This document shows positions 1-39,690 of a stretch of 40,259 bases of DNA, one piece after another. Every line of letters starts with the position of its first letter. Within the stretch, counting starts at the first letter, position 1. The stretch is from Cyanophora paradoxa CCMP329 (taxonomy: Eukaryota > Plantae > Glaucophyta): positions 1 to 40,259 of the forward strand of contig QPMI01000339.1 in the NCBI GenBank assembly GCA_004431415.1. The letters run 5' to 3'. A program made the position numbers and the translations under genes. The notes beneath the pieces were generated by a model. That model was not told the origin of the DNA. It was given only the letters and a program-made list of their open reading frames with translations, and did no database searches.

Positions 1-2185
1 GCAGGGTCATCGTGGGGCGCCTGGACCTCGCCCGCTGCCTCGCGACGGCCGCCCTCGAGTGCCTCGGCGAGCGCCCGCCCCGCCCCGCCGCCCTCCCCTT
101 CCCCGAGCTCGGTCCGCCCCGGCCCCGTGCTGCCTCGCCCTGGCCCCGCCCTCGCCGGGGGCCGACGGGCTGGCGGGCCGGCAGCGCTGCTGTGGCGGGT
201 GAAGCGGATCGTGGACGCCGAGGCGCGTCGGACCCGGGCCGAGCGCCGCCCGCAGACGGCCCCGCCGCCGCTGCTGGCCCGGCGGCCGCGCGGGCGGCGG
301 AGGAGCGGGAGATCGCGGCGGACTGCATCCACGTGCTCTTCGTGTGCGACATGAAGGAGGGCACGGGCACCTCCCGCCTCGAGCGCAACGTCAAGATCGT
401 GCGCGCCGCCGAGCTCGTCCACGACCTCCCCTGGCCGGCCCGCCCCGCCCCGCCCGCGCCCCGGCCTCGCAGCGGGGCCGACGCGCGGGGCGGGGCGCGC
501 AGACGACGACGCGGGTGCGGCTGCTGGGGCACCTGGGGGTGCTGCTGCAGGCGACCTCGCGCCGCCTGCGCTGGCGCTGGCTCCCCGCCGGCGCCGCCCT
601 CCTCTTCGAGCGCGCCCACCGCATCGCCGAGGGCCTGGGCGACGAGGCTCGCACCCCCGCCCCGCCCCGCCGCCGCTGCTCGCCCCGACGCTGCGCAGGC
701 GCGCGCCGCGGTGGCCAACGCCGAGGGCCTCCGCTCCTGCTTCGCCGTCAGGCGCGCCCCGCGCCCCGCGCACCGGCCTGCGCCGGCCTTCGGGCGTGCG
801 GGCGAGCGGGGCGCGGCGCGGCGCAGCTTCGCGGAGGCGGCGGGGTGGATGGAGGAGTCGCTGCGGCTCGCGGGTACGGCGGCTGGAACTGGGACACCGC
901 CCCCGCCCTCATGCACGCCTTCCTCCTCCTCTCCACCGCACGCCCCGCCCCGCCCGCACGCCCGGCCCGGCCCGGGCCGCGCTGAGGCGGGGCAGGGGCG
1001 GCTGGCGGAGGCGGAGGCGCTCGCGGAGGAGCTCGTCCGCTTCTTCCGCCGCACCGCCCTCGACTCGTACGGTCCGCTTCCCGCCCCCGCCCCCTCCCGC
1101 CGGCCGGCCGGGGCCGACGTGGCGCGGGGGCAGAGGGGATGGCGGCGGCACTCGGGGGCATGGCGGCGCTGCTGCGCGGCCGCCTCGACGCCCTCGCCGC
1201 CTTCCTCCGCACCTTCGACCGCGTACGCCCGCCCCGCCCCGCGCCCAGCCCCGGCCCCGCGCCCCGTTCCCGCCGCCTCACGGGCCGCCCCGCAGCACAT
1301 TGAGGCGCGGGGCTTCCTCTTCATGGGACAGGCCCGCTCCCTGCTCGCCGCCGCCGTCGCCTGGCGCGGGGGGGACCCCGCCCCCATGGCCGCGGCATGT
1401 CGCGAGAACATTGCCGCCTGGTGGCTCGAGATCGACAACATGGCATTCTACTCCCTCCGTCCGCCACGCCCCGCCCCGTCGCCGCCGCTGCCGCCGCCCG
1501 CTGAACCGGCCCGCAGACGTCATCGTCCTCGCCCTCGAGTTCGCCCTCTGGAGCGCCGCCCAGGGGCCCATGGCCACCTCCGCCCCCGCCCCCGCCGCCC
1601 CCGCCGCGCCGGCGCCCCTCCGGCCGCGGCGGCGCGCGCGGGGTTGCCTGTGGCCGTGGGGCGGGGGCCGCGGGGCGCACGTGGCGCCGGAGGCGGGGCG
1701 GGAGGGGCCGGGGCGCTGCTGGGGAGATGCGGCGGCTGATGGGCGCCCTCATGCGGCGCCCCGGGGGCATGCCCGTGCTCACGCCCTTCGACGAGATGGC
1801 CGAGGCCGGCGAGCCCGGCACGCCGCCGGCCCGCCGCGCGGCGCTCCTCCGCTCGGCCGGGGAGCGCCTCGCGGCGGCCGGGCTCCGCTCCTTCGCGCCC
1901 CTCGCCCTCCTCCGCCTCGCCCTCGCCGAGCCCGAGCCGGCCGCCGCCGCCGCCGCCCTCGAGGCCGCCCGCCGCGCCGCCCGCGAGGCCGGCCTCCACC
2001 TCCCCGCCCTCCACCGCCCCGACCCCTCGCCCTCGGCCCCGGGCCCGGGCCCGCCCCGCCCCGCCCCGCCTTCGCCTCTCTCGTCGTCTAGCCGTCCCCT
2101 GCGAGCACAGTGGCACGCCCCGCGCCGCTTGCGATCGCACCCCGCGCGCGCATTTCCCTGCTTCCGTTCGCTAATCGAGCTCTAG
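1..2185 (+). CDS. 3' part of a multi-exon gene encoding an alpha-helical/TPR-like protein (5' end outside window; exact stop uncertain, 2091 or 2185)
   Basis: Splicing at G(T/C)NCGC...CAG introns (e.g. 112-184, 438-502, 647-698, 752-826, 938-995) joins amphipathic helical peptides such as EEREIAADCIHVLFVCDMKEG, RVRLLGHLGVLLQATSRRLRW, SFAEAAGWMEESLRLA, GRLAEAEALAEELVRFF and HIEARGFLFMGQARSLLAAAVAW. The pattern resembles TPR-like C-terminal regions of STAND/ATPase-type proteins (inference). A few 1-nt frame slips occur in G/C runs. Confidence 0.6.
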
Positions 2186-3119: not shown

Positions 3120-3708
3120 ACTAAACGAACTCGTGAACTCCGCCGGGCTGTTTTACATCGACGTCGACTTTTGTAAACGATAATTAATCCCATTGATATT
3201 ACACTCGTTACTAGTTGCCAAGTTGATCATGAATTAATCCCATTGATATTACACTCGTTACTAGGATCGGAGCTGCAGCAGACGGCACGCGTTTGCCTTT
3301 GCGTCTGACTTGCGTTCACGAAGGCGTTTGCGATTGCCGCATTGCGCAGCAAGGAAAAACAGCAAGAGCGGTGTGAGGTGTCGCACGCCCCAGTTGCACG
3401 TGTCAGCACGTTGCACGTAATCATAATGACCACAAACACATATATAACTACTAAACTACTTACAAATCAGACCCGTGAACTCTACCAGGCTGTTTTAAAT
3501 CGACTTCTGAAAACGATATTTAATTTCATTGATGTACTATTTACTTGAAAATGCTGCTGTAGCTGCAGCTGACGGCACGCATTTGCAATGGCGTCAAATT
3601 TACGTTTATGACGGCGTTCGCGATTGCGGCGGCTAAACAAAATCCAGAAAGGGCGATATGAAGTGTCACGTGCGCCAGTCGCACGTAACGCCCGCCAGCT
3701 GCACGTTG
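3120..3708. repeat. Degenerate ~340-bp tandem duplication downstream of receptor copy 1, with an internal exact 33-bp duplication
   Basis: 3120-3420 and ~3461-3708 share colinear blocks (cgtgaactc..gctgtttta.atcgac; agctgcagc.gacggcacgc.tttgc; gcgattgc; gtgtc.c..gc.ccagt.gcacgt). AATTAATCCCATTGATATTACACTCGTTACTAG is exact at 3182-3214 and 3232-3264. Confidence 0.75.
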
Positions 3709-3754: not shown

Positions 3755-5058
3755 TCAGCGGCGCGGGGAGGCCGGGGGGAGCCAGGGGTCCGGGGCGAGG
3801 ACGCTGACGGTCACCGCCTCGTGGTCCACGTGCGCCCCCTCGCCCGCCCCGCCGCCCGCCCCCGCCGTGAGCGCCGGCGCCCCGGGGGCCGGCGAGAAGG
3901 CCGGCCCCTCCACATCGAGCTCGATGGTGACAGCCGCGGGCGGCTGCGGCAGCATCTCCGCCAGCGTCTGCCGGATCGCCCTGCGCGGCGGCGGCGGCCG
4001 GCGTTAGCGGCGGAGCAGCTCGGTGCGAGCGCGTGAGGCAAGCGCACAGGAAGGTGGGGCGCTGGGAGGAGTTCTTGGAGAGGCAGGCGCGGGCGAGGGG
4101 CCGGAGGGGCTCGGGGACGGCAGCGAAGGAGGAGCGGGGGAAGGGCTGCCCCCGGATGAGGTGCTCGGGGCCGATGGCCGCCCCGCCGTACGGCCGCCGC
4201 CCCGTCGCCATCTCCATCAGGATGATCCCGAACGCCCACACCTGCCCGCCCCCGCCCCCGCGCTCGAGCCCCGCGGCGCGGCGCGGCGCGGCGCGGCGGG
4301 GCGGGGCGGGGGGCGGGGCCGGCGGGGGCGCACGTCGGCCTTGACGGGGTCGTTCTTCGAGTACGTCTCGGGCGGCAGGTAGACCCTGCGCGACGGCGCG
4401 GGCTTAGCGGGGCGGCGCGGGCCGGCGGGGCGGCGCGCGAGAGGGGAGGCGCACAGCGTGCCCCGCAGCGACTTGGCCGTCTCGACGTGCCTCGAGATGC
4501 CTGCGCGGCCCCTCTCAGCCGGCGCCGGAGCCGGTCACGGCGGAGGCGGCGGCCGCGCACCGAAGTCGCCCACGCGCAGCGTCGGGCCCTTGCCGTCGTC
4601 CTGCGGAGCGGTGAGGGGGGGGCGGGCGCTGGCGCGGGCGGGGCGGGCCTTGCGGAAGACGAGGATGTTCTGGGGCTTGAGGTCGCGGTGGGCGACGGGC
4701 CGCGGCAGCTCGTGGTGCAGGTACGCCATCCCTGCGCCCCGGGGCGCCCCCGCTCCAGCCGCCGGCCGCGGGGCGCGCTTTGGGGCGGGGCGGGGGGCAC
4801 CGGCGGCGATCTGGAGGGCGAAGGAGGCGAGGAGGTCGGCGGGGAGGAGGCCGCGGCTCGCGAGCAGCGCCGAGAGCGACATCTCCGCCAGCGGCATCAC
4901 TGCGCCCCGCCCCTCAGCGCGAGCGCGAGCCGGCGGGCGGCGGGCGGCGGGGCGCGCCGATGTAGATCTTGAAGCGGTCCGTGAAGAGCGCCTCGCACCG
5001 CAGCACGTTCGGGTGGTCGCACACCTGCCCCCCCGCCCCCTCGGCCCGCGGCCCGCGG

Positions 5059-5093
<35 letters not shown>

Positions 5094-8000
5094 CTTCTGG
5101 AGGCGGGCGCCGTGGATCTCGCGGGCGGCGACCTGCGGGTCGCTGAGGGAGACCTCCTTCACCGCCCGCTTGATCTCCCCGCCCCCGTCCGCCCCCTCCG
5201 CCCCCCCCGCCCCCTCCGCCGCGTCGCCGTCGCGGAGCCAGGTGGCGGCCCACTCCGGCAGCGCGATCGCGTACACTGCCGCCGGCCCGTCAGCGGGGGC
5301 GGGGCGGGGCGGGGCGGGGGGGGGGAGGACCGCGGCCGAAGGCGCCCTCGCCGAGCATGGCGAGGGGCTCGCGGACGCTCCGGAGGAGGGGCTCGGGGAC
5401 GGGGCGCGGGGGGGCGAGCGTGGCGCGCTGGGCGAGGGTGAGGTCGTTCGCCTCCTCGCCGAGCACGGCGCTCGAGCCGCCGGCCGCCTCCGCGGGGCGC
5501 GCCGCCCCCAGCAGGTCCAGCTCGTCCCCCGTCAGCGCCGGCAGGTCCAGCTGCCCCCGCCCCCTCGTCAGCCCCGCCACGCGGCCGCCAGCGGGCGGGC
5601 CGGCGCACCCAGACGCTGGGGAGGGAGCCGTCGGTGTGCGGGGTGAGCCCCGTGATCGCCTGCAGCAGCGACGCCGACGAGTGGAGCGAGATGAACGGCA
5701 TCTCCGCCGTGTCCGTCGGCGAGCCGGCCCCGAACGCCCGCGCCCGCTGCCGCCGCTTCCAGTACACCCCGAAGCCCACCCCGATCGCGACCACGAGAGC
5801 ACCCGCCGCCGCCGCCGCGCCTATCGCCGCGCCCATCGGCGAGCCGCCACCGCCGCCGCCCGGCGCGCTGGGGGCGGCGGCGGGGGCGGTGGCGGGGAAG
5901 GTTGGCGTGGGGGGCGGCTGGTCGACGAGCGCGACGGGCTGCTCGGGGGCGAGGATGGTCTCGCCGCGGGCGAGGGCCTCGGCGGCGGGGCCCTCGGGCT
6001 GGAGGCCGGGGGCGAAGGTGGCGTTGCCCATGGCGGCGACGGGCCGGTCGTCGAGGCCCGGCATGAGCAGCTCGCCGGCCCGCGTCAGGTTCGCCATCGC
6101 CTCGAGGATGAACGCCGCCGGCAGCTCCACCGCCACCGACTTCGACGCCAGCACCGCCTTCAGCACCTGCCGCGGCCCGTCGGCGGCCCCCGACGGAACC
6201 TTGGCGGGTGAGACGGCCGGCTCGTTTCGCGCACCTGAACGTGAAACAGGATGGAGCCGCATCGGACGCCGGCGATTTGCACGCGCCCCTGCGCCCAGGG
6301 CGGCCGAGGGTCGGGGGCGGGGAGCGGGGGGCGGGGCGGGCGGGGGGACCTCGTCGAGCTCGACGCGGAGCGCTGTGGCGAGGAAGCGGGAGAAGCCCTG
6401 GGAGACGGAGGCGAGGCTCCGCCCCTGCACGTACGCCTCGCACTCCCCCCGCGTCGCCGGCACCGTCAGCCAGAACTCCACCTCCACCGACCCCGCCCCC
6501 GCCGCCGGCGTCGCGCTCGGCGCGGGCGGCGTCGGCGCGGCGGCCGCCGGGGCGGCGCCGAGGGCGTCGGCGTGGGCGCGGGGGAGGCGGCCGGGGGTGC
6601 AATGGGCGGCGAGGGCGAGGGGGTCGGGGCGGCGGCGGGGCGGCGGGGTGGGCAGCGGGGTCGGCTGCTGCGGGGGCGGGAGGAGCTGGAAGGGGACCGC
6701 CGGGAGCTCGCCGTCCGACGGGTAGCCGCAGGCGGCCGCCGCGAGGGGCACCGTGCCTGCGCGATCGCGACCCGACCGTCAGCGGCGCGAGCCGCGCCGC
6801 AGCGCGCGCGGCGACGGGGCGGGAGCGCACCGGCGAGGGAGAGCAGGCGCGACTGCTGCGCTGGCCCCGTCTCGTTCGCCACGCCGAAGAGCATCCTGGC
6901 GCCTCGCGGGGCCCCGTCAGGCGGAGCGGCGCGATCGGCGGGCGGGGCCGGCGCGGGGCGCACGCGGTGCACGAGGAGCAGTCGGCGACGAGGGCGGGCG
7001 AGGCGAGGGCGACGCCGAGGCCGGCGACGTGCTCCGCGGAGGCGTCTGCGCGCCGGCCGCTCAGCCGCGCGGGGCGGGGGCCGGAGCAGGGCCGGGACGG
7101 CGGGGCGGGCCCTTGGGGTCGAGGAAGAGGAGCGTCGCGTTCGCGTCGGCGAGCACCGCGAAGAGGTACCCCTGGCACGCACCCAGGCGGAAGGCCGACG
7201 GCGACGAGCGCGCCACCGCCCCCGCGAGGCGGGCCGCGCGGCCCCCCGCCGCGCTCCAGCCCAGCTCGATCGCGCTGCCCGCGCAGAACGCGTCAGCGCG
7301 GGTCCCCGCTCCGTCTGAGGGCGTCGCGGGGCGGCGGAATGGACGGACTGTATCTCAATCGTGGCGTCCCCATCTTCCGACACGACCGCCACATACCAGG
7401 TCCCGTCTGCCCGGGCGGGGCGTTGGACAAAAAAACTGAAAGCAAGAAGGAAGTGATCGAGCACCGATGCGCGCGCAAGACGGGTTAGGCCGCCGCGGCA
7501 GGTCCACGTTGCCTTGTCGGATGTTGGCGTCAGTGGCCCACACCCGGCCTGACACGTCGTAGCTGGCGGGCGCAGGATGAGTCAGATATGGTGCCTAGAT
7601 CTAGAAACGAGCAAGGTCGACGCGCGCTCATTGTGCAGACCTGATCAGGTCGTTGCGCGCCGCGCCGTTCGACCCCTCGCCGCCGAAGACCTGAGGCGGC
7701 CCGTTCAACCGCAGCTACTTCGAATGAAACGAGCTCGGAGCACCCAGAGTGTGCGATTGAAAACCGTCATGCCTGCGGGTTGAAGAGCAGGTGAGAGTTC
7801 GAGGCGCGCGAGCGGCGGGCTCGGGATGGCGCGCACAGTGGTTCGCGCGGGGGGCGGGCATGGCGGGGAGGTCGACGCGCTCGTCCAGCGAGCTCGAGAG
7901 CGCCCACGCCGCAGCGCTCGCCTCGTCCGTCGTCCCGACGTACCCGCCTGCGCCCCCCCCCCCCCCCCACCCGCTCACGCCCGGCTGGCTGCGGGGCCCC

Positions 8001-8164
8001 GGCAGGCGCTCACCGGTGCAGAAGACGGCCGCCGCGTTGTCCCACGCGCACTGCACCCCGTAGCCTTCGAAGGGGGCCCGTGCCGTGGCCTCCGCCCACG
8101 TTCCTCTCTCTGCGTGCGCGGCGACGCGGTTGGGCGCGGGCAGCGCGGGGGGGAAGGGGGGGAA

Positions 8165-8196
<32 letters not shown>

Positions 8197-11100
8197 ACTG
8201 GGGAGAGGGGCGGGGCGGACCGACGTCGTGAACGAGGATTGCCCCGCCGGCGGCGGCTGCCGCCGAGGCCGGCCGGCGCCCGAGCAGGGCGACCTTGGCG
8301 AACCCGAGCGAGCTGCGGAAGGCGACGACGGCCGAGAAGGCGGCGCCCGGCGCGACGAGAGCGCTCGATAGCGACACGTCGCCGCGCTTCATGAGGAAGA
8401 CGCCTGCCGGCCGCTCGCGATCGGACGGGGCCGGCGCGCGCCCGGAAGGAAGGCACGCCCCAGCAGCGCTCACCGGGGACAGTGGCGGGGGCGGGCGGGG
8501 ACCAGGCCGAGGCCACTCCAGCCGAGGAGAGCAGCCGCGCCGTGCACGAGGCGGGCCAGCTGCCGGCCTCCGACACGGAGACGGGCAGGAGCGCACGGAG
8601 CGGAGGGGAGGCGGCGGTGAAGTTGGCGGCGTACGGGCCGCCGGCCCCCGTGCAGCGCACGTCGGCGAGCTCGACGCTCTGGCCGGCCGCGAAACCAACC
8701 TCCAGCGCCAGCGCCGAGGCGTTCGCTGCAGCGAGCGACGCGATCGCCGGCGCCCCCGGCGCAGCTACCGCGACGGGCGGCGAAAGGTGGAGCCGGTCAG
8801 CCCACGCCAAAAGCTGCTGCATCTAGGAAATACCTGCAGGGATCGATGTCGCCGCGCGGGCTGGAGGCGAGAGCAAGCCCGTCGTGGCTCGCACGGAGAA
8901 CGCGCAGTCGACAGAGTAGCTTCCGCTGTATTGAGGACGCGTCGCAACCAAGAAGCTGAGGCGGCCAGCTGCTCGCTGCAGCGCGCCAACGGGGACGCTC
9001 CCAACATACGTAAATGCTCTGCCGGATTCGTTGCAGCTGTGCTCGAGATAAGCGACGCCCTGCTCCGAGGAGAATGCAGCGTCCGCCTGGAAGCACGTCG
9101 CGTTGATCGCTGTCAGAACGATGTCCGACGGAGTCCACGGATTGGCTGCTCGGGACAACGATAGTCAGAAATCGCGAGATCAAGCGTGGAAAACCCATGG
9201 CAATCGGAAGGGGCAGACCGGCCAAGACGGGGAGCGATGCGCGTACGCCGGGCGTGCTGGGAAGCCCGGTCACTCCCACGGCAGATAACGCGCAGTCGAG
9301 GGTGTAGTTGCCGAGGTACGATGGAGACACAGGCATCAGCACGACGGCGCCGCTCGAATCTGTGTCGGCGACCGCCGGGAGAGCGCGGTAGGGCCCGCCG
9401 ACACCTGAACAACTGACATTGAGCGAAGTCACGTTCTGGCCAGCTCGGAAACTCAAGCGGAACTCAGCGAGCGAAGAATTCAATGCCACGGCCGAGAGAA
9501 GCGCCGGCATATCCGGAGCCGCTGCGAGATAGATTCAAACAAACACTTGAACTAATCGCAATGGGTTTCACGGAGCGCACCTGCTGGCACCGTCACCACG
9601 GCGGCCGCAGTCCACGGCGACGACAGACCCGTCGACGCCCGCACGAGCGCCCTGCAGCTCAGCTCGAAGCTGCCGCTGTACGACGGCATGAGACCGACGC
9701 TGATGTTCAAACCCGACGCCGCAGCGCCCGTCACCGTCGCATTGACCGCGTACGGGCCGCCAGCGCCCAGGCACTGCATTTCGACCGCCGACACGCTTTG
9801 ACCGGGCGTGAACGATACGCGCACCACTGCTTGCGTGGCATTCCAAAACACGACGGCCGTCTCAAGCGGCGCCCATGGCACGGCTGCAGGATGGCATGAG
9901 ATCGCAAGACGCAACCAAGATCAGAGCCTTATTATCAGCCAGAAGGGGTAGCCGCCAGGTGCGCACCAGCTGGAACCGTCACCATGGCGGCCGACGTCCA
10001 CGACGACGGCAGTCCTGACAACGCGTGAACGCGTGTTGCGCAGCTCAGTTCGAAGCTGCCGCTGTACGACGGCACAAGACCGACGGTGATGTTGATGCCC
10101 GATGCTGCAGCATCTGTCGTGGACGCGTTGACAGCATACGGATCCCCGACGCCCGAGCAATAGACTTCCACTGCCGTCACGTTCTGGTCGGGCACGTATG
10201 GCACTCGAATGACGGCCTGTGTCGCGTTTGTTGCGCTGCCAAGGTTGGACAGCGGCGCCCAGGGCACGGCTGCGCAGCCGAGCAAGACGTGCAGCAAGGC
10301 GAATGTGAGCGGTGCAACTGGGAGGAACGCACGCCGCCTCGACAACGCGGAAACCAGCTGAGCGCACCTGCTGGCACCGTCACCACGGCAGCCGACGTCC
10401 ACGGCGATGGCAAACCCGTCGACGCCCGCACGAGCGCTCTGCAGCTCAGCTCGAAGCTGCCGATGTAAGACGGCACCAACCCGATGCTGACGTTCACGCC
10501 CGATGCAGCAGCATCGGTCGTGGACGCGTTGACTGCATACGGCCCGCCGATGACCGAGCTCGAGCAAAAGACTTCCACAGACGTCACGTTCTGGTCGGGC
10601 ATGTATGCCACTCGAATGACGGCCTGTGTAGCGTTTGTTGCGCTGGCGAAATTCGACAGCGGCGCCCAGGGCGCGGCTGCGCAGTCAGGCAGAACGGGCG
10701 ACCAGGCGGATGTGAGCGGAGCAACTGGGGAGGAGGCCTTGAAAACTCGAGCTCAGAATACAGCCGAGCGCACCTGCTGGCACCGTCACCATGGCGGCCG
10801 ACGTCAACGTCGACGACAGACCTGTCGACGCCCGCACGAGCGCCTTGCAGCTCAGCGCAAAGCTGCCGCTGTACGACGGCACGAGACCAACGCTGATGTT
10901 CACGCCCGACGCCGCAGCGTCCGTCACCGTCGCATTGACCGCGTACGGGCCGCCAGCGCCCAGGCACTGCATTTCGACCGCCGACACGCTTTGACCGGGC
11001 GTGAACGACACGCGCACCACTGCTTGCGTGGCATTCCAAAACACGACGGCCGTCTCAAGCGGCGCCCATGGCACGGCTGCAAAAGAGCATGAGATCGCAA

Positions 11101-14100
11101 GACGCAACCAAGATCAGAGCCTTATTATCAGCCAGAAGGGGTAGCCGCCAGGTGCGCACCAGCTGGAACCGTCGCCACGGTGGCCGACGTCCACGACGAC
11201 GGCAGTCCCGACAATGCGTGAACGCGTGTCGCGCAGCTCATCTCGACGTTGCCACTGTACGACGGCACAAGACCGACGGTGATGTTCACGCCCGAAGCCG
11301 CAGCATCTGTCGTGGACGCGTTGACTGCATACGGCCCGCCGCTGCCCGAGCTCGAGCAATAGACTTCCACTGTCGTCACGTTCTGGTCGGGCATGTATGA
11401 CACTCGAATGACGGCCTGTGTCGCGTTTGGTGCGCTGACAGAAGTCGACAGCGGCGCCCAGGGCACGGCTGCGCAGCCGAGCACAACGTGCAGCAAGGCC
11501 AATGTGAGCGGTGCAACTGGGAGGAACGCACGCCGCCTCGACAACGCCGAAACCAGCTGAGCGCACCTGCTGGCACCGTCACCACGGCAGCCGACGTCCA
11601 CGGCGACGGCAAGCCCGTCGACGCCCGCACAAGCGCCCTGCAGCTCAGCGCAAAGCTGCTGCTGTACGACGGCACGAGACCGACGCTGATGTTCATGATC
11701 ACGCCCGACGCCGCAGCGCCCGCCGCCGTCGCATTGACCGCGTACGGGCCGCCAGCGCCCAGGCACTGCATTTCGACCGCCGACACGCTTTGACCGGGCG
11801 TGAACGACACGCGCATCGCAGCTTGCGTGGCGTTCCAAAACACGACGGCCGTCTCAAGCGGTGCCCATGGCGCGGCTGCAATAGAGCATGAGATCGCAAG
11901 ACGCAACCAAGATCAGAGCCTTATTATAATTATCAGCCAGAAGGGGGAGCCGCCAGGTGCGCACCAGCTGGAACCGTCACCATGGCGGCCGAGGTCCACG
12001 ACGACGGCAGACCCGACAACGCGTGAACGCGTGTTGCGCAGCTCAGTTCGAAGCTGCCGCTGTACGACGGTACGAGGCCGACGGTGATGTTGATGCCCAA
12101 TGCTGCAGCATCTGTCGTGGACGCGTTGACAGCATACGGCCCGCCGCTGCCCGAGCTCGAGCAATAGACTTCCACTGCCGACACGTTCTGGCCGGGCACG
12201 TATGACACGCAAATGACGGCCTGTGTCGCGTTTGTTGCGCTGCCAAGGTTGGACAGCGGCGCCCAGGGCACGGCTGCGCAGCCGAGCAAGACGTGCAGCA
12301 AGGCGAATGTGAGCGGTGCAACTGGGAGGAACGCATGCCGCCTCGACAACGCGGAAACCAGCTGAGCGCACCTGCTGGCACCGTCACCACGGCAGCCGAC
12401 GTCCACGGCGATGGCAAACCCGTCGACGCCCGCACGAGCGCTCTGCAGCTCAGCTCGAAGCTGCCGATGTAAGACGGCACCAACCCGATGCTGACGTTCA
12501 CGCCCAATGCAGCAGCATCGGTCGTGGACGCGTTGACTGCATACGGCCCGCCGATGACCGAGCTCGAGCAAAAGACTTCCACAGACGTCACGTTCTGGTC
12601 GGGCATGTATGCCACTCGAATGTCTGCCTGTGTAGCGTTTGTTGCGCTGGCGAAATTCGACAGCGGCGCCCAGGGCGCGGCTGCGCAGTCAGGCAGAACG
12701 GGCGACCAGGCGGATGTGAGCGGAGCAACTGGGGAGGAGGCCTTGAAAACTCGAGCTCAGAATACAGCCGAGCGCACCTGCTGGCACCGTCACCATGGCG
12801 GCCGACGTCAACGTCGACGACAGACCTGTCGACGCCCGCACGAGCGCCTTGCAGCTCAGCGCAAAGCTGCCGCTGTACGACGGCACGAGACCAACGCTGA
12901 TGTTCACGCCCGACGCCGCAGCGTCCGTCACCGTCGCATTGACCGCGTACGGGCCGCCAGCGCCCAGGCACTGCATTTCGACCGCCGACGCGCTTTGACC
13001 GGGCGTGAACGACACGCGCACCACTGCTTGCGTGGCATTCCAAAACACGACGGCCGTCTCAAGCGGCGCCCATGGCACGGCTGCAGGATGGCATGAGATC
13101 GCAAGACGCAACCAAGATCAGAGCCTTATTATCAGCCAGAAGGGGTAGCCGCCAGGTGCGCACCAGCTGGAACCGTCGCCACGGTGGCCGACGTCCACGA
13201 CGACGGCAGTCCCGACAATGCGTGAACGCGTGTCGCGCAGCTCATCTCGACGTTGCCACTGTACGACGGCACAAGACCGACGGTGATGTTCACGCCCGAA
13301 GCCGCAGCATCTGTCGTGGACGCGTTGACTGCATACGGCCCGCCGCTGCCCGAGCTCGAGCAATAGACTTCCACTGTCGTCACGTTCTGGTCGGGCATGT
13401 ATGACACTCGAATGACGGCCTGTGTCGCGTTTGGTGCGCTGACAGAAGTCGACAGCGGCGCCCAGGGCACGGCTGCGCAGCCGAGCACAACGTGCAGCAA
13501 GGCCAATGTGAGCGGTGCAACTGGGAGGAACGCACGCCGCCTCGACAACGCGGAAACCAGCTGAGCGCACCTGCTGGCACCGTCACCACGGCGGCCGACG
13601 TCCACGGCGACGGCAAGCCCGTCGACGCCCGCACAAGCGCCCTGCAGCTCAGCGCAAAGCTGCCGCTGTACGACGGCACCAGCCCGACGCTGATGTTCAC
13701 GCCCGACGCCGCAGCGCCCGTCACCGTCGCATTGACCGCGTACGGGCCGCCAGCGCCCAGGCACTGCATTTCGACCGCCGACGCGCTTTGACCGGGCGTG
13801 AACGTCACGCGCGCCACCCCAAGCGTCGCGTTCCAGAACACCACGGCCGTCTCAAGTGGCGCCGATGGTGTGGCTGGCAGACAGTATGAGAACGCAATAC
13901 TAAAGTAAAAGTCTGTTCAGCTGCCGGCGGCGGCCAGGAGCGCACCAGCTGGAACCGTCACCACGGCGGCCGAGGTCCACAACGACGGCAAACCCGTCGA
14001 CGCCCGCACGAGCGCCCTGCAGCTCAGCTCGAAGCTGCCGCTGTAGAGAGGAGGCAGCGCGAAGCTGAAATCGATGCCCGCGGCCGCTGCGTCCGTTACC

Positions 14101-17100
14101 GTTGCGTCTTTCTTGTATGTTACACCGTCGCTCGAGCTCAAGCACTCTGCTGTCACTGACGTCACGCTCTGTTTGGACGTGTACGACACGCGAACGACGG
14201 CTTGCGTTGCGTTCGTGACGGAGGCCGCAACTTCGAGTGGCGCCCAGGGCGCGGCTGCGCAGCCGGGCGGGGACAAAGCGCAAACCGCGTGCGTCAGCAG
14301 CAAGCAGGCATACGCGGCCTTTTCTTAAAGCTTCCGACGAAGGAATCGGACTCACCCGCTGGCACCTTCACCACGGTCCCCGAGGTCCACGCTGACTCGA
14401 CGCCTGTAGACGCGCGCACGAGCGCCCTGCAGCTCAAATCGAAGCTGCCGCTGAACGATGGCGCCAGGTCGATTCCGACTTCGAGGCCCTTTGCATCGTC
14501 GTCCGTCGCTGTCGCGTTGACCGCGAATAGGCCCGTGGCGCCCGAACATTCCACTTGTGCCGATGTGACGTTCTCTCCCGGCGTGAACGAGACGAGCACC
14601 ACGACTCGCGTGGCATTCACGGAAACGACGCCCGCCTCCAGCGGCCCGGCTGCGACAAGGCAGAACAAGGCGCTGTTCAGGCTATGGCTGAGAGGGCTCT
14701 GGCCGATTCCGAGGCCAAGTCCGCGCGAGTGCACCTGGTTCGTACTCGAAGGGGCCGGCGCAGCGGGTGTCCGACACAGAGAGCGTGAAGCTGCCGCTGG
14801 TGGGAGAGGTCCCCAACGCGGCTGCGCATCCGTTAGCAGGCCGCCGCATGGCACACGAACATCCCCTTCCAAGCATATAGCGATCACACCGGAAGCGATC
14901 ACAAACCAGCCGCCCCAATACCACTCGTCATTCGCAAAGAACAATCGACTCGCACCTTCCACAATGACGTAGTACGGGTGGTTTGGCATCAGCGTGTAAT
15001 ACTTCTTGTCTGTCACGAGCAGCGAGCAGCTCCCTGACACTAAACGATGCCTCAGCACACGGCGTTGGCCAGACGCGGCGACGAAACGCACCGCTCGCGA
15101 TGAAGAGGCTGCCCGCGGCTCCGGGACAGCCGATGTAGAAGTAGAGGTTAATGTTGTCTAGGGGAACATCCGGCTGGGGCGTGCAAACGGAGATGTTTGC
15201 TTGTTTTCTGAGCACAGCGGGCCGTGTCAGATCATCCTGCGCATGCTCACCAAGAGTTCAACTGAGAGACACACGTCGCTCTCGCGAGATTGCGGAGGAG
15301 GAAAAGGGCGCCCGGCTTTCCGGATCCGCCCGCGACGGGCGTGCGCCCCAGCAGCGTCGAGCTCCGCATCCGGCAGAATGAGAGCGGGGAGGCGCTCGTG
15401 TTTGCCGAGCAGTGCGAATCTGTTTGAGATGCGAAAGGCAAGTCAGGGGTGGCGTCGAGAATCGCGGCACGCGGGATGATCGCACATAGTGGCGGAGGTT
15501 GCGAGCCGTCCGATTTGCAAGACTCCGATTTGCTGCACCATTAAAGACCCAGCATATGATTATGCAGATTAAGGAATGAAAAAGCAAAGGATCATGCAGA
15601 CCGCGGAAAATCAACATAAGTGAGGCCGTATTCATTGATCCAGGTAGCTATAGCCCACGTGTTCGTGTTCGACCATGTTCTCTCTCTGAAGTAAGCTATG
15701 TAGTACGTGCCTGCAAGCGTGCACTGTGAGCGTGATTGATTTCAACCGCTGCGCACGTGATTACAATCTTATGCACCAGACAAGAGAACTCTGGTATCAG
15801 TTGAAATGCGGAAACCCAAACCAATACCCTCACTATTTGGCCAGAAGGAGTCGTACATCCACATCTTGCGCTGCAAAGGCGTCTACAATTAGCATTTCTT
15901 GGGCAGACAGCTTCGAATTCCGAGCGGCGCAGCGGGCACACAGCAAGAATGTTGGATGCTGGGTCCGTGGGGCAGCCCTGGGGAGCGCGCTCGCGAAGGT
16001 AAAGACCAAAAGAGCTCGAGCCGAAGGAGGAAGGGGGCCCGCACATCCGTAACGATCATGAACTCGTACGACCAAACACACCAGTGGCCTGCCTCGCGCT
16101 CGACTCGTTATGATCCTCGAAGCTCAAAGAGACTTCAGCAACTGGTCCGCACCTCTGTGAACGCTTCCGCCGTACAGGTCGCCGCTGAAATCGGCGAAAG
16201 GACCGTAACAATCGGACCGGCGGGGTAAGAAGCGATTTCCGTTGTTGTCCAAACGAACTTCTCCGCTGTTCAACGAAAAAGGCAGCTCAAAGCGTTGAAC
16301 GTGATCAGTGAATGCCGGAACGTATGCGTAGTATCCAACTGCAGCCTTTTCGGCCAGCCATTGCAGATTCTGCGCGCCGTGGTGACGGTCATTGCGATTA
16401 CCGCAAGTGGAGGGCCCGCCGCGGCACCTGAACGCTGCGGGCTCGAGCGACGACGAGGTCCTGCGAGCACGTTCCCAGCGGGGTGAACTTGCAGGTGCCG
16501 TCGTCGGTCCAGTGGTCGGGCGCATAATCGTGGTACGGGCACGCGACGGTGTCGAAGACGTCGAGGCGGAAGGCGCCGGACGCGTTGCCGAAGCCGCCCC
16601 ACCGGTACGACGTGAGGCCGGGCCCCGCGACGTTTCCGTACACACTGTTGCCCTGGACGAGGACGTAGTACGTGCCGGGCCGGATCGACGCCCCTGCAGA
16701 CCGGATCCCATTGGAGGGAGGGAAAGACCGAGAACAAGAACGTAGAAAGAATTACCGTATCGCTCTACAATGGGATTGCCATAGACATTCTCTGTCCAGA
16801 ACCACCCGTACAGGCGCCGCTCGTACGACGGCATTGTCGGGTTCCCGATGTAGACCGCGAGCGACGGGTACGTCAATTCGAAGTTGCGCAGCGTGATCTC
16901 GAGCCCGTTGCTGCGCGCCCTCGTCAGACGCCGCGCCGGCATCGAAGGCGGACCGCGCGCACTAGTCCTGCTCGATGCGGAGGCGGGCGAGGAAGACGCC
17001 GGAGGCCTTTGCCGGCTCGGAGGCGGCGTCGAAGTACGCGTCGCCCCACTGCAGCAGCTGCCGGTGCAGCGTGCTCGGCCGCCCGGCGGTCGTGTTTGGT

Positions 17101-20100
17101 GTGAACGAGCACATCCCGATTTCGACCCCCGAGAAGAGAGAGGCGTCGTACGCCGCGGGCCCTACCGCCCCTGTCGCACCTGCATGCGTGTTAAGAGGCG
17201 TTTCGCGGTCTAGCAAAGATAGAAGAACGAGCAGGCTGTAGTTCACCGGGCAGAAGCACTTTGGAGACGCTAAGAAGTCGCTTCGGGCTGCCTTGTCCCA
17301 AGATCGAGGCCCGCATCGCGGCGATCGAGCCGCCCACCATCGCGTCCTCGATGGCCTGCCGGCCTCGAATCATCAGGCGGGCCGCGTCGACCAGCTCGGC
17401 TCGCGGGCGCATGCGCACGGAGAGCGGCGAGCCCAGAAGGGCCTGGAGGTAGAGGGCAGCGACGCCGGCGGCGATGCCGGCGGCGTAGGAGGTGCCGTGG
17501 AAGATGCCGGTGGTGGCGTTGAAGCCGGGCAGGCCGTTCGCGCCCGCCACCGCCGCCGGCCGCAGCGCCGACCGCACGTTCTGCCCGGGCGCGAACAGCG
17601 TGACGCAGCTGCGCAAGCGCAAAGTGAGACTGGCGCGCGAGCTTTTGGCGGGGCCCTGGGATCGACCCGGACCTGCCATAGTTCGAGAAGCCGGCGCGGT
17701 AGTCGTCCTGGTCGCTGGCGCCGACGTTGATCGCCCCCGGCGTGTTGCCTGCGGGCGCGAAATGAGACTCCCGCTGGCTCGGCCCGCGCCACGGGGCAGC
17801 TTGCTGGCGCGCCTGGCATGCTGTTGCACGCGTCGGCGTAGTCGTTGCCCGCCGCCTGCGCAGCGCCGTCGGCTTCGGCGGCGGCGTGAAGCAGTGCGCA
17901 GGGCCCGCACCGTTATTACGACAGAGCGGGCCTCGCGCAGGCGCGCGACGGCGGTTGTATACAGCGCAACGACCTCCGCTTTCGGCAGAGAGGAGTCTGC
18001 ATTGCTCCAGGTCAACGAAACGGCGAGAAGGGTCACGGACGGGCGGCCGCGATTCTGGACGGAGGCGAGGACGTCCTCCAGCCCTGGGCACGAGCGGGCG
18101 GGGCGGTCAGAGCGTTACAGGAGCACTGGAACCAAGGCGCTAGAGGGGAAGGGGCAGGTGAGCTCACCAGCCAGCACATCCTCGTGTCTGGCTCTTGCGG
18201 AGCAGTTGCCGGCGGCCCCGCCCGAGCGCGCGAAGACCTTGACGGAGAGAACGGTGGACCCCGGGGCGGCGCCGAGCGTGCGGCCGGCGGCGGCGGCGGC
18301 GACGGCCGTCCCGTGCGACTCGGGCGAGCAGTCGCTCCCCAGGAGCTCGCTGCCCGGCGCGTACAGCGCCGAGTCGACGTCGTAGAGGGGGACCTGCGCC
18401 GCCGCCGTGTCCAGGCCGCGGTCCCAGGCGGGAGGGGGCGGGGCGCACGACGCGGCCCTCGAGCTCGGGGTGCGTGGCGAGCACGCCCGTGTCGACGACG
18501 TAGATGTCCACGCCGGCCCCGTCCACCGTCCCCCGGTCGAAGCGGCCGTCGAGCGGGCCCGAAGCCTGGTCGAGCCTGCACGCGCCGCCGGGGCTCGGGG
18601 GCAGCCGCGGTCCGGGGGCCGCGCGGGGGCGGGGGCGGGGCACCGGTCGAGGTGCCAGGGGGCGACGTCGCCCCAGGGCTGCGGGCCGTAGCCCAGCGCG
18701 GTGAAGTCCACCGCCTGCGCCGGCGACACCGCCTGCGCCGCGTCGGGCCGGCCCGTGGCGCCGGGGGGCGTGCGGACCGCGTCAGGCGCGACGAGTCTGA
18801 CGAGCGCGTGCGAGCGGAGCGACGCCGCATCCTCGGGCGCCATCCTGCCGCGGCGAGCGAGTTACAGGTAGACGTGGAGGGGGGGAGACGGAAGGGCGGA
18901 GCGATTGGAGGGGGGGGGGGGGAGGGGGGGGAGGGGGGGCGGAGGGTTAGAGAGAGGAAGTGGGGAGGAAATGGAAAGGAGGAGGGAGAGAGGGGGGGGG
19001 GGGGGAGGGAGGGAGGAGGGACTTCGGAAGCGCGGAATAGAAAAGATAGAGCGAATGGGTGAGGGAGGAGAGATGGACTTCATGTTGTGCGGAGAAGGGG
19101 GCGGGAAGAGGGGGTGGGAAGAGGGGGTGGTGGGGGAGAAGTGCATTGCGGCCTCCCGAGAAGAGAAATGCATCCCGAGAGGAGAAGGAGGGGTTGAGGG
19201 GGGACGGATGGGGAGAGGAGAGGGGTTACCGCCCGCGGGGTAGAAGGGGAGCAAAGCGAACCCGAAAGGAGGAGGTGGGGGAAGGGGGAGGGAGGCGGAA
19301 CGAGAATCAGGTAGTGAGGCCGAAGCGCATATGGGGGCCGGGGGAATCGAAAAAAAGATTTTAAAAGGAGCATGATCGGGGGAGGAGCATGCGGGCCAGG
19401 AGGATCCAAAAAGAGGGGCCCCGGGAGGGAGGGGCTGTGGGGCCCGGAGAGAGGGGGAGGGGAGGGGCGGAGGAAGCGAAGGGCCTTGGGGTGGGGTGAG
19501 GGAAGGGGGGGGGGGGGGGTAGGTGAAGGGAAGCAAAAAAGGGGGGGTAGGTGAAGGGGTAAGCCGGAAAGGAGGAAGTGGGGAAAGGGGGTAGGGGGGC
19601 GGAAGGTCAGGTAGGGGGGTCGTGGAGCATATGGGGGCCAGGGAGGATCCAAAAGGGGGGGGGCGGGGAGGGAAGGGCATGGAACAGGGATTGAAGAAGC
19701 ATGCCGGGGGAAGGGGGAGGGGGCAAGGCGGAGAGCGGAGAAAGCGGGAATAACAGGAGGAGGACAGAGGGTACGGTGGGGGGAGGGAGGGGGGGGGTAG
19801 ACTGAGGGGCGGAGCCGGAGAGGAGGGGGCTGGGCGGGGGCACCTGGCGCTGAAGCCGAGGAAGGCGCGGCGGTAGGTGTGCCGGATGGCCGCGCCCCCG
19901 TCCACGCCGCGCCGGTCCGCCGCCGCCCGCACGAGCGCCGCGACCGCCGCGAGGCCCCGCGCCCCCGCCCGCCGGTGCAGCGCCTGCGCAGCCGTCGCCG
20001 CTGCTCCTCCGCGGGGGCGGCGGCGCAGCGCGCACCACGATGTACGGAGCAGGCCCCTCCCGATCCTGGATCGCACTCTGCTCGCCGCTATGAGTTTGCG

Positions 20101-20383
20101 GCTCTGAGCTTGCAGTGGCGACAGGTGGATCGCCGACCGCCAGCGCGGCCGAGGCGTGCGCTGTGACACCGTCGACGTCGACGTCTAGCCGCAGCCGCAG
20201 CCGCAGCCGCGAGGAGCCGAAGGTCAACGCGACGAGCACCAGACCAAGAACAGCGAGCGCGCCGAACACTGGCCGTCCCCGTTGTACATGCCTTGCGATT
20301 ACCGGCGCCGCCGCTCTGCTGGAGGCGGTGCCCCGCGCCCGGCTCACTACGCATGCGCCAGTTTGCAGCACGCGCCAGAACAT
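3755..20383 (-). CDS. Giant multi-exon receptor, copy 1: signal anchor + I9 prodomain + S8 subtilase + PPC-like modules + FN3-like repeats + Kelch-like + SEA-like + TM + protein kinase
   Basis: ATG at 20383, TGA at 3755-3757. Exon phases could be followed through GY..AG introns across the domain junctions examined, e.g. ...IEQD-TA|C-NGLEITL (intron 16911-16962), ...ATVPG|GVFLMKRG, ...LLSLA|GTVPLAAA and ...RPTFL|AIRQTLAEM. No separate start/stop is needed between protease, repeats and kinase. A few junctions in 14.6-15.3 kb are less certain. Confidence 0.8.
3980..5365 (-). CDS. Protein kinase domain (TKL/receptor-kinase-like) of copy 1
   Basis: Spliced motifs LGEGAFGRVY, RAVKEV, REI, HPNVL, GMAYLHHELPRPVAHRDLKPQNILV, VGDFGISR, GTLVYLPPE, KADVWAFGIILMEMATGRRPY and QRPTF. 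All catalytic residues are present. Confidence 0.95.
5759..5830 (-). other. Single-pass transmembrane helix of copy 1
   Basis: AAIGAAAAAGALVVAIGVGFGVYW followed by the basic stop-transfer KRRQRAR, placing the kinase inside (positive-inside rule). Confidence 0.85.
6040..6490 (-). other. SEA-like juxtamembrane domain between Pro/Thr/Ser-rich linkers
   Basis: VEVEFWLTV...FSRFLATALRVELDE|GRVQIAGVRCGSILFHVQ|VLKAVL resembles the SEA strand-helix-'GS-hydrophobic' arrangement (inference from motif only). Confidence 0.5.
6830..8410 (-). other. Kelch-like beta-propeller region of copy 1
   Basis: Spliced peptides AVFCTG|GYVGTTDEAS...LPAMPAPRANH|CMTVFNRTLW|VFGGEGSNGAARNDLI|SYDVSGRVW match the Kelch consensus (hydrophobic-GG, ND..Y, W, P.PR..H). 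Confidence 0.75.
8470..14655 (-). repeat. Array of 16 one-exon ~100-aa FN3-like domains (13 similar + 3 divergent), with a 2004-bp higher-order repeat
   Basis: Unit of ~390-400 bp = exon (PWAP...NATQAV.RVS...C.G.GGPYAVNA...GLVPSYSGSF.LSC...GLPS.WTSAA.VTVPA) plus a short phase-1 intron. Near-identical ORFs recur 2004 bp apart (10312/12316, 10484/12488, 11068/13072). Confidence 0.9.
14660..17175 (-). other. Post-protease region with 2-3 PPC (pre-peptidase C-terminal)-like beta modules, Cys/Trp/Tyr-rich
   Basis: Recurrent motif IRPGTYYVLVQG, LLSGTYYIAYF, LMPNHPYYVIVEG, which resembles the 'GTYY.hV.G' strand of PPC domains that follow secreted peptidases. Confidence 0.5.
17250..18700 (-). CDS. 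Peptidase S8 (proteinase K-like subtilase) domain of copy 1
   Basis: PWHLDR|LDQ, GAGVDIYVVDTGV (Asp 18491-18493), SHGTAVAAAAAG (His 18313-18315), AAGND (oxyanion Asn 17844-17846), AINVGASD..D.RAGFSNYG, VTLFAPG..V.SA, GTSYAAGIAAGVAALYL (Ser 17488-17490). Confidence 0.93.
18780..20060 (-). other. Inhibitor I9-like subtilase prodomain (interrupted by a 999-nt intron)
   Basis: PYIVV...IRHTYRRAFLGFSAR|MAPEDAASLRSHALVRLVAPD matches the I9 consensus (YIV; Y...F.GFSA.L; L...P.V..VE.D). Confidence 0.8.
18845..19843 (-). other. Unusually long polypurine/polypyrimidine-skewed intron
   Basis: Donor GTGCCC at 19843, acceptor CAG ending 18845, phase 2, restoring FSAR-MAPED. The + strand is almost entirely G/A. 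Confidence 0.8.
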
Positions 20384-20773: not shown

Positions 20774-21541
20774 CCTGCGGATGTGGACGACACGCCGTCG
20801 TGAGGAGTCAGCTGCAGCTGCCGCTAAAGGCGAGGTCGCGATGCTTCCGGATTCTGCGGGGGAAGCTTCGAGAGCCTGTACCCGCGGCTAGCGCCTGTTG
20901 AGTACCCGGGGCTGAGATTTGCTACATTCATTGCAACTCTGTTGTTTGAAAAAACTTGAAAGGACTGTCTGAGGCTGAATCGACATGAAAACTTGAAGTT
21001 GCGCGTGCCAACTTGCAAGTTGGCACTGCGGCCACTGCCGCCACTGCGGCAAGAAGTTTTCAGATTCTTCTCGTGCTCGTTCTCCTTATCTCTCGCGTTC
21101 TCGCGATCGTGTCCCCTGTCGTGATCCCTGTAGCTAGCTCCTATGCATATATATGTCTTGCAATCTCGATTGCCTACGGCTTCGAATTCTTTGATTTGTG
21201 ATTGCTTTGTCTCTGCAGCTGTTCTGAAGCCTTGAAGCATCAGTCTCGAAAAGCAACTTTATGTCACAGTGTATCATATACGTAGTTTCTAGATCTAGAA
21301 TACTGCTTTCTTTCTGATCATGAACGTTAATATCATACAAGAAATTTGCCGAATTACGTATACTAAGTTACTAAGTTAAATCATGTGATTTCTTTGCATT
21401 GTTAATTATCAGAATCGCCGAGTCGGCATAAAAAAATTTAACGCCTCATCACAGTTTCCGATGACGACTCACATGGTTAGACTACCAACACGCAAATAGA
21501 AGACCACAAACAAGAAATTACAGCACTAATACTGTACGACT

Positions 21542-23528
21542 GGGCCCATTCCTATTCCTGCTCTCGCTGCCCCTCTCGACGCTCCTTTCCCCCCATTCCC
21601 TGCGGTCCCGATCCCTGTGCTCCTTGGCCCTCTGGCCCCGCCTCTGCCTCCTCCCTCCTTACAACTTGCTGTCACGGGGCCTCTTCACTTGCCTGTTCCC
21701 CGGCAGGTCCCTGGTCATCTTGCAGCTCCATACCCCTTCTTACCTCTTCCCCTTGCTCCTCCACTTCCGCCCCTGCGAGGCCCTCTTTCTGACGTCCTCC
21801 TGGTTCAGCCCCCTCTTCAGCCCATCCTTCTTGCCCCCGCTTCTGCAACTGTGACGCTGGGCGGCACTATCTTTTTGCATGCCCCTCCCGCCTCTACGTC
21901 CCCGGTCTCTTTGCGTCTGCATCCACTTTCCCGGATCCGCTTGCAGGCCCCCTCGCCTCCAGAGCTCGCCATCACTTCGGCCTCCCTCGCCTCCGCTCTC
22001 GATTCTCCATACCCTTCGAATAGCCGCCTCCTCTCTCCTCCTCCGCCCTCCCTCCCCCCTCGAGCTCCGGGTCCTCGGCCTCTGCCCGCTTCCGAGTGTT
22101 GGCGAGACTGTCCTCTTTTCGATCTCCCCGTCATTCCGGCTCCCTGCTCCCCTTCGGCGCCTCGGGTCCATCTGCGGGTCCTATCCCGCTTCCTGGCGCT
22201 CGTGAGATTCGCCGCCGGCGCCCTCGTCGGGCCCTTGCGCCCTCGAGCTCGTCTCTCTCTGCACCGCCCATGGCCATGACCTCCGTGTCATCTGCTCCGG
22301 CGCCACCCGACCTTTCTCCTGCTTTGCTGCCCTCTCTTCGGCGCCGGCAGCGATCCCCGTCACCTGCTCGTGGCCCTTCCCCTGCCTCCGACCCTTCCTC
22401 GGCCCCTCCTCGCCTCTTCCGTCTCGTCGGCCCCCGCCGCATTCCCGTCGGCGGATCTCTCGATCGACCCTGGACTCTCCGCCTGCCACTGTCTGCGGGG
22501 TACCTCCGCCGCCGTGTTCGGCGCCGGCTGTCAGTACTTTGCTCGGTAGCTCCCCCGTCGTGGCTCCTCGGGGCCTCTTCGTCGTCGTCGTTCGCTGGGT
22601 TCCGGCTCCGGGTCAGATTTCTCGCCGGGCTTACCTTCTCCTGGCTCTGCTCCTGGGCCCTCAGCTCCGGGACCGGCTTCCCCGATCTCCTTCCGGACTC
22701 GTGGTCGTACCCGTCGCCGGCTTGCCGAGCCTGCGGCTCCTTCTACTTCCCCCCGGCGGTTTGCCGGGCCGGACCCTCCGGCCTTTGTTCTTGATACCGG
22801 ACTACCGCCTTTGTCCTTGTCTTCTGCTTCGCTGGTCGCGATCGTATCCCGCCGGCGCCGGCGTACTTCTTCGTCTTCTAGTTTAGTTCGGTCTGGTTCG
22901 GATTCTGATCGTAGTGTTGATGCTAGAGTTAGTTTCAATACTAGCTATAGTCCTCGTGCTCGACCTGTTGTTCGCCGTCGTTTGCAGTTCGATTGCCCGC
23001 CTCGACCCCGGCCGGCTTTAGTGATTCCTTTGACTGTTCTTTTGCCTGCTCTTGATCCGCCTGCTCCGCCTCCTGTGTCCTCCTCGACCTCGTGCCGTAG
23101 CTCTGCCCTTTCGCATCGTCCTGCTTCGCCTCCGCCTCCATGTCGTCTTGTTGTTCCTCTTACTTGTCTTCTTCCTGTTATTTATCTTTCTCAATTTTGT
23201 CCCCCGCTTCTTAGTGATGTAATTCCTTCTGATATTGATGGTATCTCTAGCTCTGGCTCTTCTTCGTGTCAGTTATCCTCTAGCTCTGGCTCTTCTTCGT
23301 GTCAGTTATCCTCTGTCCCTAGATCTGCTCGATTTATCGTCTCTTCTCGCAATCGATCTGTCTCGAGCTCTGTGTCTTTCCTTTTTTATTGTCGATTTTG
23401 GCTCTTTGTCTTATCTTTCTTCGTGCTCTTGTCTTAGTTCTTTTGCTATTTTGTCTCTATGCCCCCTGGGCAGCCCCCGCAGTGCTGGTGTCTAGAGACT
23501 GTGGCCGGTAATTCACCAAAAAAAAAAA
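21542..23528 (+). mobile_element. Non-LTR-type retroposon insertion (probably 5'-truncated or non-autonomous), poly(A)-tailed, 15-bp TSD
   Basis: TAATACTGTACGACT at 21527-21541 and 23529-23543 flanks a C/T-rich ~2 kb segment ending in A11 (23518-23528). Composition switches abruptly at both edges. No RT motif recognised. Confidence 0.8.
23245..23314 (+). repeat. 33-bp tandem duplication inside the retroposon
   Basis: CTCTAGCTCTGGCTCTTCTTCGTGTCAGTTATC at 23245-23277 and 23278-23310. Confidence 0.9.
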
Positions 23529-23548
23529 TAATACTGTACGACTAATTG

Positions 23549-23583
23549 TTTTTTTTTTGGTGAATTACCGGCCACAGTCTCTA
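23549..23583 (-). mobile_element. Ultra-short inverted copy of the same element's 3' end plus poly(A), with its own ~20-bp TSD
   Basis: 23549-23583 is the exact reverse complement of 23493-23527. It is flanked by TAATACTGTACGACTAATTG at 23529-23548 and 23582-23601. Confidence 0.8.
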
Positions 23584-38700: not shown

Positions 38701-39657
38701 CGGTCGACCAAGGTCGACGTCATGGCGAGCAGCGTCACGGCCCGCCGCTTGCGACTCTGAATGGCGAGGCGGACCTGTTCCAGCCCTGGACACGGGCGGG
38801 CGACCATGATCAGATGGAACAAGCGGCGGACGATGATCAGGGCCTGGCGGCGGCACGGGAAACAAGGCGCTAGAGGGAGGGAGCAGGAGAGCGAACCAGC
38901 CAGCACGGCGCTGTCCAGTGCCGGGCCAGTGCAGTCACTGGCGGCCCCGCTGGAGCGCGCGAAGACCTTGACGGAGAGGACGGTGGCCCCCGGGGCGACG
39001 CCGAGCGTGCGGCCGGCGGCAGCGGCGGCGACGGCCGTCCCGTGCGACTCGGGCGAGCAGTCGCTCCCCAGGAGCTCGCTGCCCGGCGCGTACAGCGCCG
39101 AGTCGACGTCGTAGAGGGGGACCTGCGCCGCCGCCGTGTCCAGGCCGCGGTCGCACGCGGGAGGGGGCGGGGCGCACGACGCGGCCCTCGAGCTCGGGGT
39201 GCGTGGCGAGCACGCCCGTGTCGACGACGTAGATGTCCACGCCGGCCCCGTCCACCGTCCCCCGGTCGAAGCGGCCGTCGAGCGGGCCCGACGCCTGGTC
39301 GAGCCTGCACGCGCCGCCGGGGCTCAGGGACAGCCGCGCGGCCGCGCGCGCGCGCCGCGGGGCGGGGCACCGGTCGAGGTGCCAGGGGACGACGTCGCCC
39401 CAGGGCTGCGGGCCGTAGCCCAGCGCGGTGAAGTCCACCGCCTGCGCCGCCGACACCGCCTGCGCCGCGTCGGGCCGGCGCGTGGCGCGCGGGGCGCGGG
39501 GGGCGCGGACGGCGTCGGGGCGACGAGCGCGACGAGCGCGTGGGAGCGGAGCGACGCCGCATCCTCGGCGCCATCCTGCCGCGGCGAGCGAGTCACCGAA
39601 GACATGGGAGAGGGGAGACGGAAGGGGGGGCTTCTCGGGGAAAGAGGGGGATGGGGG

Positions 39658-39690
<33 letters not shown>

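Follow-up and report, generated by a model that had tools for sequence, protein, structure and literature searches.

At least two giant surface receptors of the glaucophyte Cyanophora paradoxa, as predicted from their genes, hold a catalytically intact-looking protease on a long stalk that connects it to an intracellular kinase. Both genes lie in the stretch of DNA analyzed here (the window, 40,259 nt; strain CCMP329, contig QPMI01000339.1, assembly GCA_004431415.1). The first gene runs on the minus strand from 20354 to 3755 and corresponds to tig00001413_g8635.t1; the second, its tandem paralogue (23767-40259, minus strand; tig00001413_g8636.t1, P0002), carries 18 stalk repeats and has its 5' end outside the window. 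The first protein is predicted to be a single-pass receptor kinase, with signal peptide, ectodomain, one transmembrane (TM) helix and cytoplasmic kinase on one chain.

The model of the first gene was built by hand and then amended using RNA splice joints and the public model. The initial version had 60 exons and 3814 aa and was free of stops, with short GC-rich introns breaking one long frame; the corrected version has 64 exons, 63 introns and 3712 aa with zero internal stops, and is the same at every residue as public protein P0116 (tig00001413_g8635.t1, EukProt EP00741), an uncharacterized record holding an identifier only. P0116 is a gene-finder model, so this agreement is not independent proof. 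Splice donors were 59 GT and 4 GC, acceptors were AG throughout, and the median intron length was 68 nt. An earlier sequence-only reading of the locus had claimed that a single spliced frame links prodomain, protease, PPC-like modules, FN3-like repeats, Kelch-like blades, SEA-like domain, TM helix and kinase in that order, and the stop-free 64-exon model, equal to P0116, agrees with this. The start that it placed at 20383 was replaced by the public model start at 20354, from which a short first intron leads to a classical signal peptide. The only long intron, of 999 nt (18845-19843), consists of purine/pyrimidine-skewed low-complexity DNA; a related stretch of the paralogue (39590-40259) lies at the same place and matches it at 74–92% in patches, and the long low-complexity intron therefore predates the duplication.

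RNA contigs from three RNA-type runs were compared with the gene over 14150-20149, from the prodomain into the stalk, where part of the contigs carry paralogue letters. This interval contains 25 introns, of which at least 17, the 999-nt intron among them, are matched by joints or loose ends of the contigs. The splice joints were present in RNA contigs and absent from DNA contigs; run X9, whose contigs were unspliced, contained none of the RNA splice joints in 14150-20149. Contigs with zero mismatch to this copy included 15092-15207 joined to 15275-15419, 17910-18082 and 19846-19972. At the head-to-stalk intron (14734-14650), the loose end of an RNA contig at 14735 agrees in 27 of 30 letters with the first repeat exon, and the contig thus comes from a close paralogue. 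None of the RNA contigs over 14150-20149 covers the whole gene, and contigs this short are unable to prove a full transcript.

Elsewhere in the window, an unrelated gene with many introns has its 3' part at positions 1-2100 (plus strand); it is convergent with the receptor gene and has a helical, TPR-like reading. Downstream of the receptor gene, 3120-3630 contains a tandem duplication of about 300 nt (78–80%) and an exact 33-nt repeat. The intergenic segment 21527-23604 is flanked by a short direct repeat (at 21527, 23529 and 23582), has a perfect 35-nt inverted repeat (23493-23583) and a strong strand skew, and is possibly a mobile-element remnant.

The protein (all features below on the minus strand) begins with a signal peptide recognized by hydropathy (aa 1-22, 20210-20354, where the public model places intron 20347-20269), followed by an I9 inhibitor prodomain that contains the 999-nt intron (aa 78-152, 18724-20044; Pfam Inhibitor_I9, E 1.8e-7) and an S8A protease of the aqualysin/proteinase K type (17247-18687; Pfam Peptidase_S8, E 1.9e-22). 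Pfam E-values for the S8, I9, Kelch and Pkinase families were taken from scans of parts of P0116, not of the whole protein. For neither giant protein did a whole-protein scan detect S8; fragments gave it at E ≤ 2e-22, and scanning exon by exon returned weak matches only; architecture surveys may therefore undercount such receptors. The full catalytic set reported by the sequence-only reading was recovered in order: Asp207 (18493), His248 (18315), the oxyanion Asn358 (17846) and Ser434 (17490) are all intact. The same four residues are retained in three receptor-type heads and in three secreted relatives. With the paralogue as query, the closest PDB matches to the S8 region were aqualysin (E 3.7e-36) and other Thermus/proteinase K-type enzymes, with PCSK9 next (E 4e-25). 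The substrate-binding strand and the motif around the catalytic Ser are non-canonical, reading VSLTW and GTSYAAG in place of SLGG and GTSMATP, so activity in trans may be restricted or lacking. Among the Cyanophora S8 relatives, SLT, TST and SST replace the canonical SLGG, and the post-Ser motif departs as well. The protease is followed by three PPC-like modules (aa 494-1032, 14735-17179), the second of which is variable. These modules are assigned at motif level, from three GTYY/PYYV-type motifs, with an Atlas PPC cluster (0.86) as a lead; the region gave no Pfam PPC match and a blank PDB profile search.

The stalk consists of 16 repeats with a predicted FN3 fold (8474-14649), each encoded by one phase-1 exon and bearing two invariant Cys. 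The structural model of a repeat (pLDDT 87) aligned with an FN3 domain of PTPRD at Z 11.9 and an rmsd of 2.2 Å over 98 residues; Pfam fn3 was not matched by the repeats, although the predicted fold is a seven-strand FN3 sandwich. The earlier estimate of about 16 FN3-like repeats thus became a count of exactly 16, with the fold given by structure prediction and comparison. In the first hand-built model, 51 of the 63 N-glycosylation sequons fell within these repeats. Repeats 4-8 and 9-13 are 89–100% identical and reflect a recent five-exon duplication. The stalks of both tandem copies (9581-13472 and about 29600-34650) contain a higher-order duplication of five exons and about 2 kb, in which exon identity reaches 100%; unequal crossover probably alters the length of the stalk, and the assembly determines the exact number of repeats counted. 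In several repeat exons (29843-34645), public model P0002 has in-frame introns of 51 nt where the model of the first copy reads through, and these introns are likely prediction artefacts.

Between stalk and membrane lie a Kelch-containing region (aa 2659-2970, 6831-8403; Pfam Kelch, E 7.7e-11), a Pro/Ala/Thr-rich linker identified from its sequence (6497-6700) and a SEA-like domain (5984-6496). The linker aligned at 44% to the paralogue model, partly resembling a shifted frame; compensating indels, a fault in the assembly or introns called differently could account for this. The SEA-like assignment comes from fold comparison and has moderate support: the best VIA matches were TROP-2 (Z 8.0), SorCS2 (7.0), a MUC16-like SEA (6.8) and PCDH15 (6.4), with unrelated ferredoxin folds intermixed, whereas the region had no Pfam SEA match and a blank PDB profile search. 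The SEA-like domain of the earlier reading is accordingly kept at the level of fold (Z 6-8) and not of family. Its invariant CGS-hydrophobic motif (Ser3118, at 6255), in the forms CGSILF, CGSVLF and CGSIMF, was retained in all seven sequences compared, and its GS-hydrophobic part resembles the site at which mucin SEA domains cleave themselves. Hydropathy showed only two hydrophobic segments in the protein, the N-terminus and a TM helix at aa 3238-3256 (5759-5830), the latter followed by a KRR stop-transfer sequence. The cytoplasmic part is an RD protein kinase (3957-5367; Pfam Pkinase, E 2.1e-37), TKL-like with a Ser/Thr-type HRDLKPQN loop, and its G-loop, Lys3423, HRD and DFG motifs are intact, as the sequence-only reading had held for helix and kinase alike. 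The best PDB matches were MLK4 and MLK1 (TKL); neither IRAK nor any plant RLK appeared among the PDB matches at E ≤ 1e-20.

The two tandem copies share about 85% nucleotide identity, and a third protease head was found on another contig (P0016, tig00000269_g23717.t1). In the public model of P0016, some 1100 aa of other sequence precede the head and the protein breaks off within the PPC region; the model is probably mis-joined and truncated. The tandem copies have kinases that are 98% identical (dN/dS 0.17) and S8 flanks that are 89–97% identical (dS 0.03-0.05); the cleft segment that includes both substrate-binding strands (about aa 267-354, 17911-18258) is 53–60% identical, with a dS of 0.70. 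In a three-way comparison, the cleft of the first copy grouped with that of the third (88–95%), the second standing apart (53–62%), and in the second PPC-like module the second copy grouped with the third (86–98%), the first standing apart (56–77%). Positive selection was sought in the variable segments by dN/dS, which was below 1 (0.53 and 0.55) and gave no classical sign of it; the pattern is therefore one of old variants exchanged in mosaic fashion and not of demonstrated positive selection. Patchy gene conversion could produce such mosaic combinations.

A profile of the FN3 repeat was searched against 1.84 billion representative sequences and returned 24 matches; all 17 of those looked up were from C. 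paradoxa. Several of them are receptor kinases on a common FN3-Kelch-SEA-TM-kinase chassis with 6-28 repeats, and three (P0001, P0003 and P0008) have the same chassis with a Kelch region as N-terminal head in place of the protease. Over the span of S8 to the third PPC-like module inclusive, the protease head has homologues in C. paradoxa subtilases P0025, P0026, P0027 and P0062, which are secreted and have neither kinase nor TM helix. The join of head and stalk is a phase-1 intron, like the introns between repeats. The simplest reading is that a secreted subtilase (I9-S8-PPC ×3) was shuffled onto a pre-existing receptor chassis, replacing a Kelch head. The kinase tree is compatible with this: the two protease-headed copies were grouped (99/99) among other chassis members. 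Because this tree was rooted at its midpoint and its inner branches had weak support, the direction of the head swap is an inference. Glaucophytes would thereby be seen to build receptor-kinase families of their own by exon shuffling.

The reading that we favor, while tentative, is a distinct possibility: a modular, lineage-specific receptor kinase whose protease head recognizes a specific extracellular protein, engagement of which switches the kinase on. The protein would be secreted and its I9 prodomain cut in cis. An FN3 domain is about 3.5-4 nm long, and an extended stalk would display the protease some 55-60 nm from the membrane. Recognition would fall to the cleft and PPC-like modules, which would engage and probably cleave, or become trapped by, a specific extracellular protein; candidates may include a surface protein of a microbe, an inhibitor of proteases, or a conspecific or mucilage glycoprotein. 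Engagement might then cluster receptors or pull on the SEA-like domain and so turn the kinase on, and exchange of cleft and PPC segments among paralogues may give different specificities on a near-constant kinase. That the head senses, as had been suggested, is favored indirectly by its position in the Kelch slot of the sister receptors and by variation centered on the cleft. Cyanophora is a wall-less phototrophic flagellate, and two of the targets once proposed, prey and wall proteins, are therefore unlikely. The favored reading is weakened by the flexible 16-domain stalk, a poor allosteric link. In the stronger form of the idea, the receptor would sense with its own, active protease: the kinase would be activated when a foreign protein is cleaved or trapped at the tip, and segment recombination would yield a repertoire of specificities; we regard this as rather doubtful. 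If true, a protease sensor with recombining segments would resemble a system of diversifying non-self recognition, here in the plastid-bearing lineage that branched earliest.

The head may instead behave like PCSK9, which cleaves only its own prodomain, remains blocked by it and acts as a non-catalytic binding domain; the triad would then be kept for folding and export, and the head would be a ligand binder. PCSK9 belongs to the same subfamily and was among the top PDB matches (E 4e-25), the cleft residues are non-canonical, and the enzyme-derived ectodomains of plant receptor kinases, CHRK1 for example, are often binding modules. Binding is also raised for algal protease receptors in PMC12757656. 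The nearer PDB matches, however, are active enzymes (aqualysin), and the secreted relatives carry the same non-canonical residues, which are therefore family traits and not decay after the fusion; we consider this explanation somewhat unlikely. It is likewise unlikely, in our view, that the protease is an effector, tethered or shed at the SEA-like domain (for mucilage remodeling, anti-adhesion or defense), with Kelch and SEA-like regions doing the sensing, or that a peptide which it frees binds the proximal Kelch region. Kelch and SEA-like regions are present in every kinase-bearing chassis member checked, whatever its head; the GS-hydrophobic motif resembles a self-cleavage site, and the head is a complete secreted-enzyme module. 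A tether alone would not require a kinase, yet no other part is as conserved, and the head sits where sister receptors have a Kelch binding domain. It is very improbable that gene prediction has joined two neighboring genes, one for a secreted subtilase and one for a receptor kinase lacking a head, or that the main transcript stops before the kinase: the gene is not covered from end to end by any single read or contig, P0016 terminates within the PPC region and near-identical repeats may be mis-assembled, but there are 16.6 kb without a stop, a second signal peptide or a gap of intergenic size, the introns past the prodomain are all 45-134 nt against local intergenic gaps of 1.6-3.4 kb, the tandem paralogue has the same layout, and the head-to-stalk splice occurs in the RNA contig from a close paralogue.

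Searches for homologues of the S8 region were restricted to proteins of 1011-3216 aa and 1990-6331 aa in limited candidate sets, and within these no protein combining S8 and kinase was found outside Cyanophora; shorter or distant cases fall beyond the reach of length-limited searches. A query with a single S8 exon was empty and, being length-limited, uninformative. No study of Cyanophora receptor kinases was found in the literature search, and the searches found no receptor experimentally shown to signal through its own extracellular protease. This locus offers an expressed case with intact catalytic residues in a culturable freshwater alga, with natural controls on hand in cleft-differing paralogues, kinase-less secreted relatives and Kelch-headed sister receptors.

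Several known systems share parts of the architecture. The aqualysin I/proteinase K S8A subfamily, including PCSK9, has the I9 prodomain, triad, oxyanion Asn and conserved motifs, but its members are secreted or soluble, have no stalk, TM helix or kinase, and differ from the Cyanophora proteins in the cleft strand and post-Ser motif. Actinobacterial I9-S8-FN3 surface proteases, the nearest non-Cyanophora matches in the 1011-3216 aa range (32–38% identity), combine protease and FN3 but contain no kinase Pfam family, and their FN3 domains are not matched by the Cyanophora repeat profile. Among animal receptors with FN3 stalks and SEA domains, LAR/PTPRD, Sevenless/ROS1, mucins, TROP-2, PCDH15 and TMPRSS6 present FN3 arrays or membrane-proximal SEA-like folds; this likeness is at fold level only (6–19% identity), and none has a subtilase head and an intracellular kinase. 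In plants, the chitinase-RLK CHRK1, the GDPD-RLK SNC4 and the thaumatin-type PR5K have enzyme-derived or defense-protein folds as ectodomains of single-pass kinases, but these ectodomains are short, often catalytically dead and not proteases, and the kinases are of the RLK/Pelle type.

A comparable design is reported from chlorophytes, in whose RLKs 11.3% of annotated ectodomain regions are protease-related, with Aqualysin I and Proteinase K domains named (PMC12757656, Physiol Plant 2026). The evidence there consists of computational fold and pLM matches, and the main text is silent on catalytic residues; binding, ligand processing and autolytic activation are the mechanisms proposed. Since that paper reports and proposes protease-RLKs computationally, the idea is in print as a prediction. 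The earlier statement that no characterized receptor kinase with an intact S8 ectodomain is known holds within the searches made here, but the class itself has been reported. A survey of protist TMKs (PMC10463195) mentions neither proteases nor glaucophytes, and the giant stalked glaucophyte form with all catalytic residues appears to be undescribed. Like the Cyanophora receptors, the chlorophyte proteins are algal and join an external S8A-type protease, a TM helix and an internal kinase, and FN3 and Kelch domains also occur in that survey; by its main-text description, they differ from the glaucophyte receptors, which have an intact prodomain and triad, a stalk of 16-18 FN3 repeats, a SEA-like domain and a species-specific chassis.
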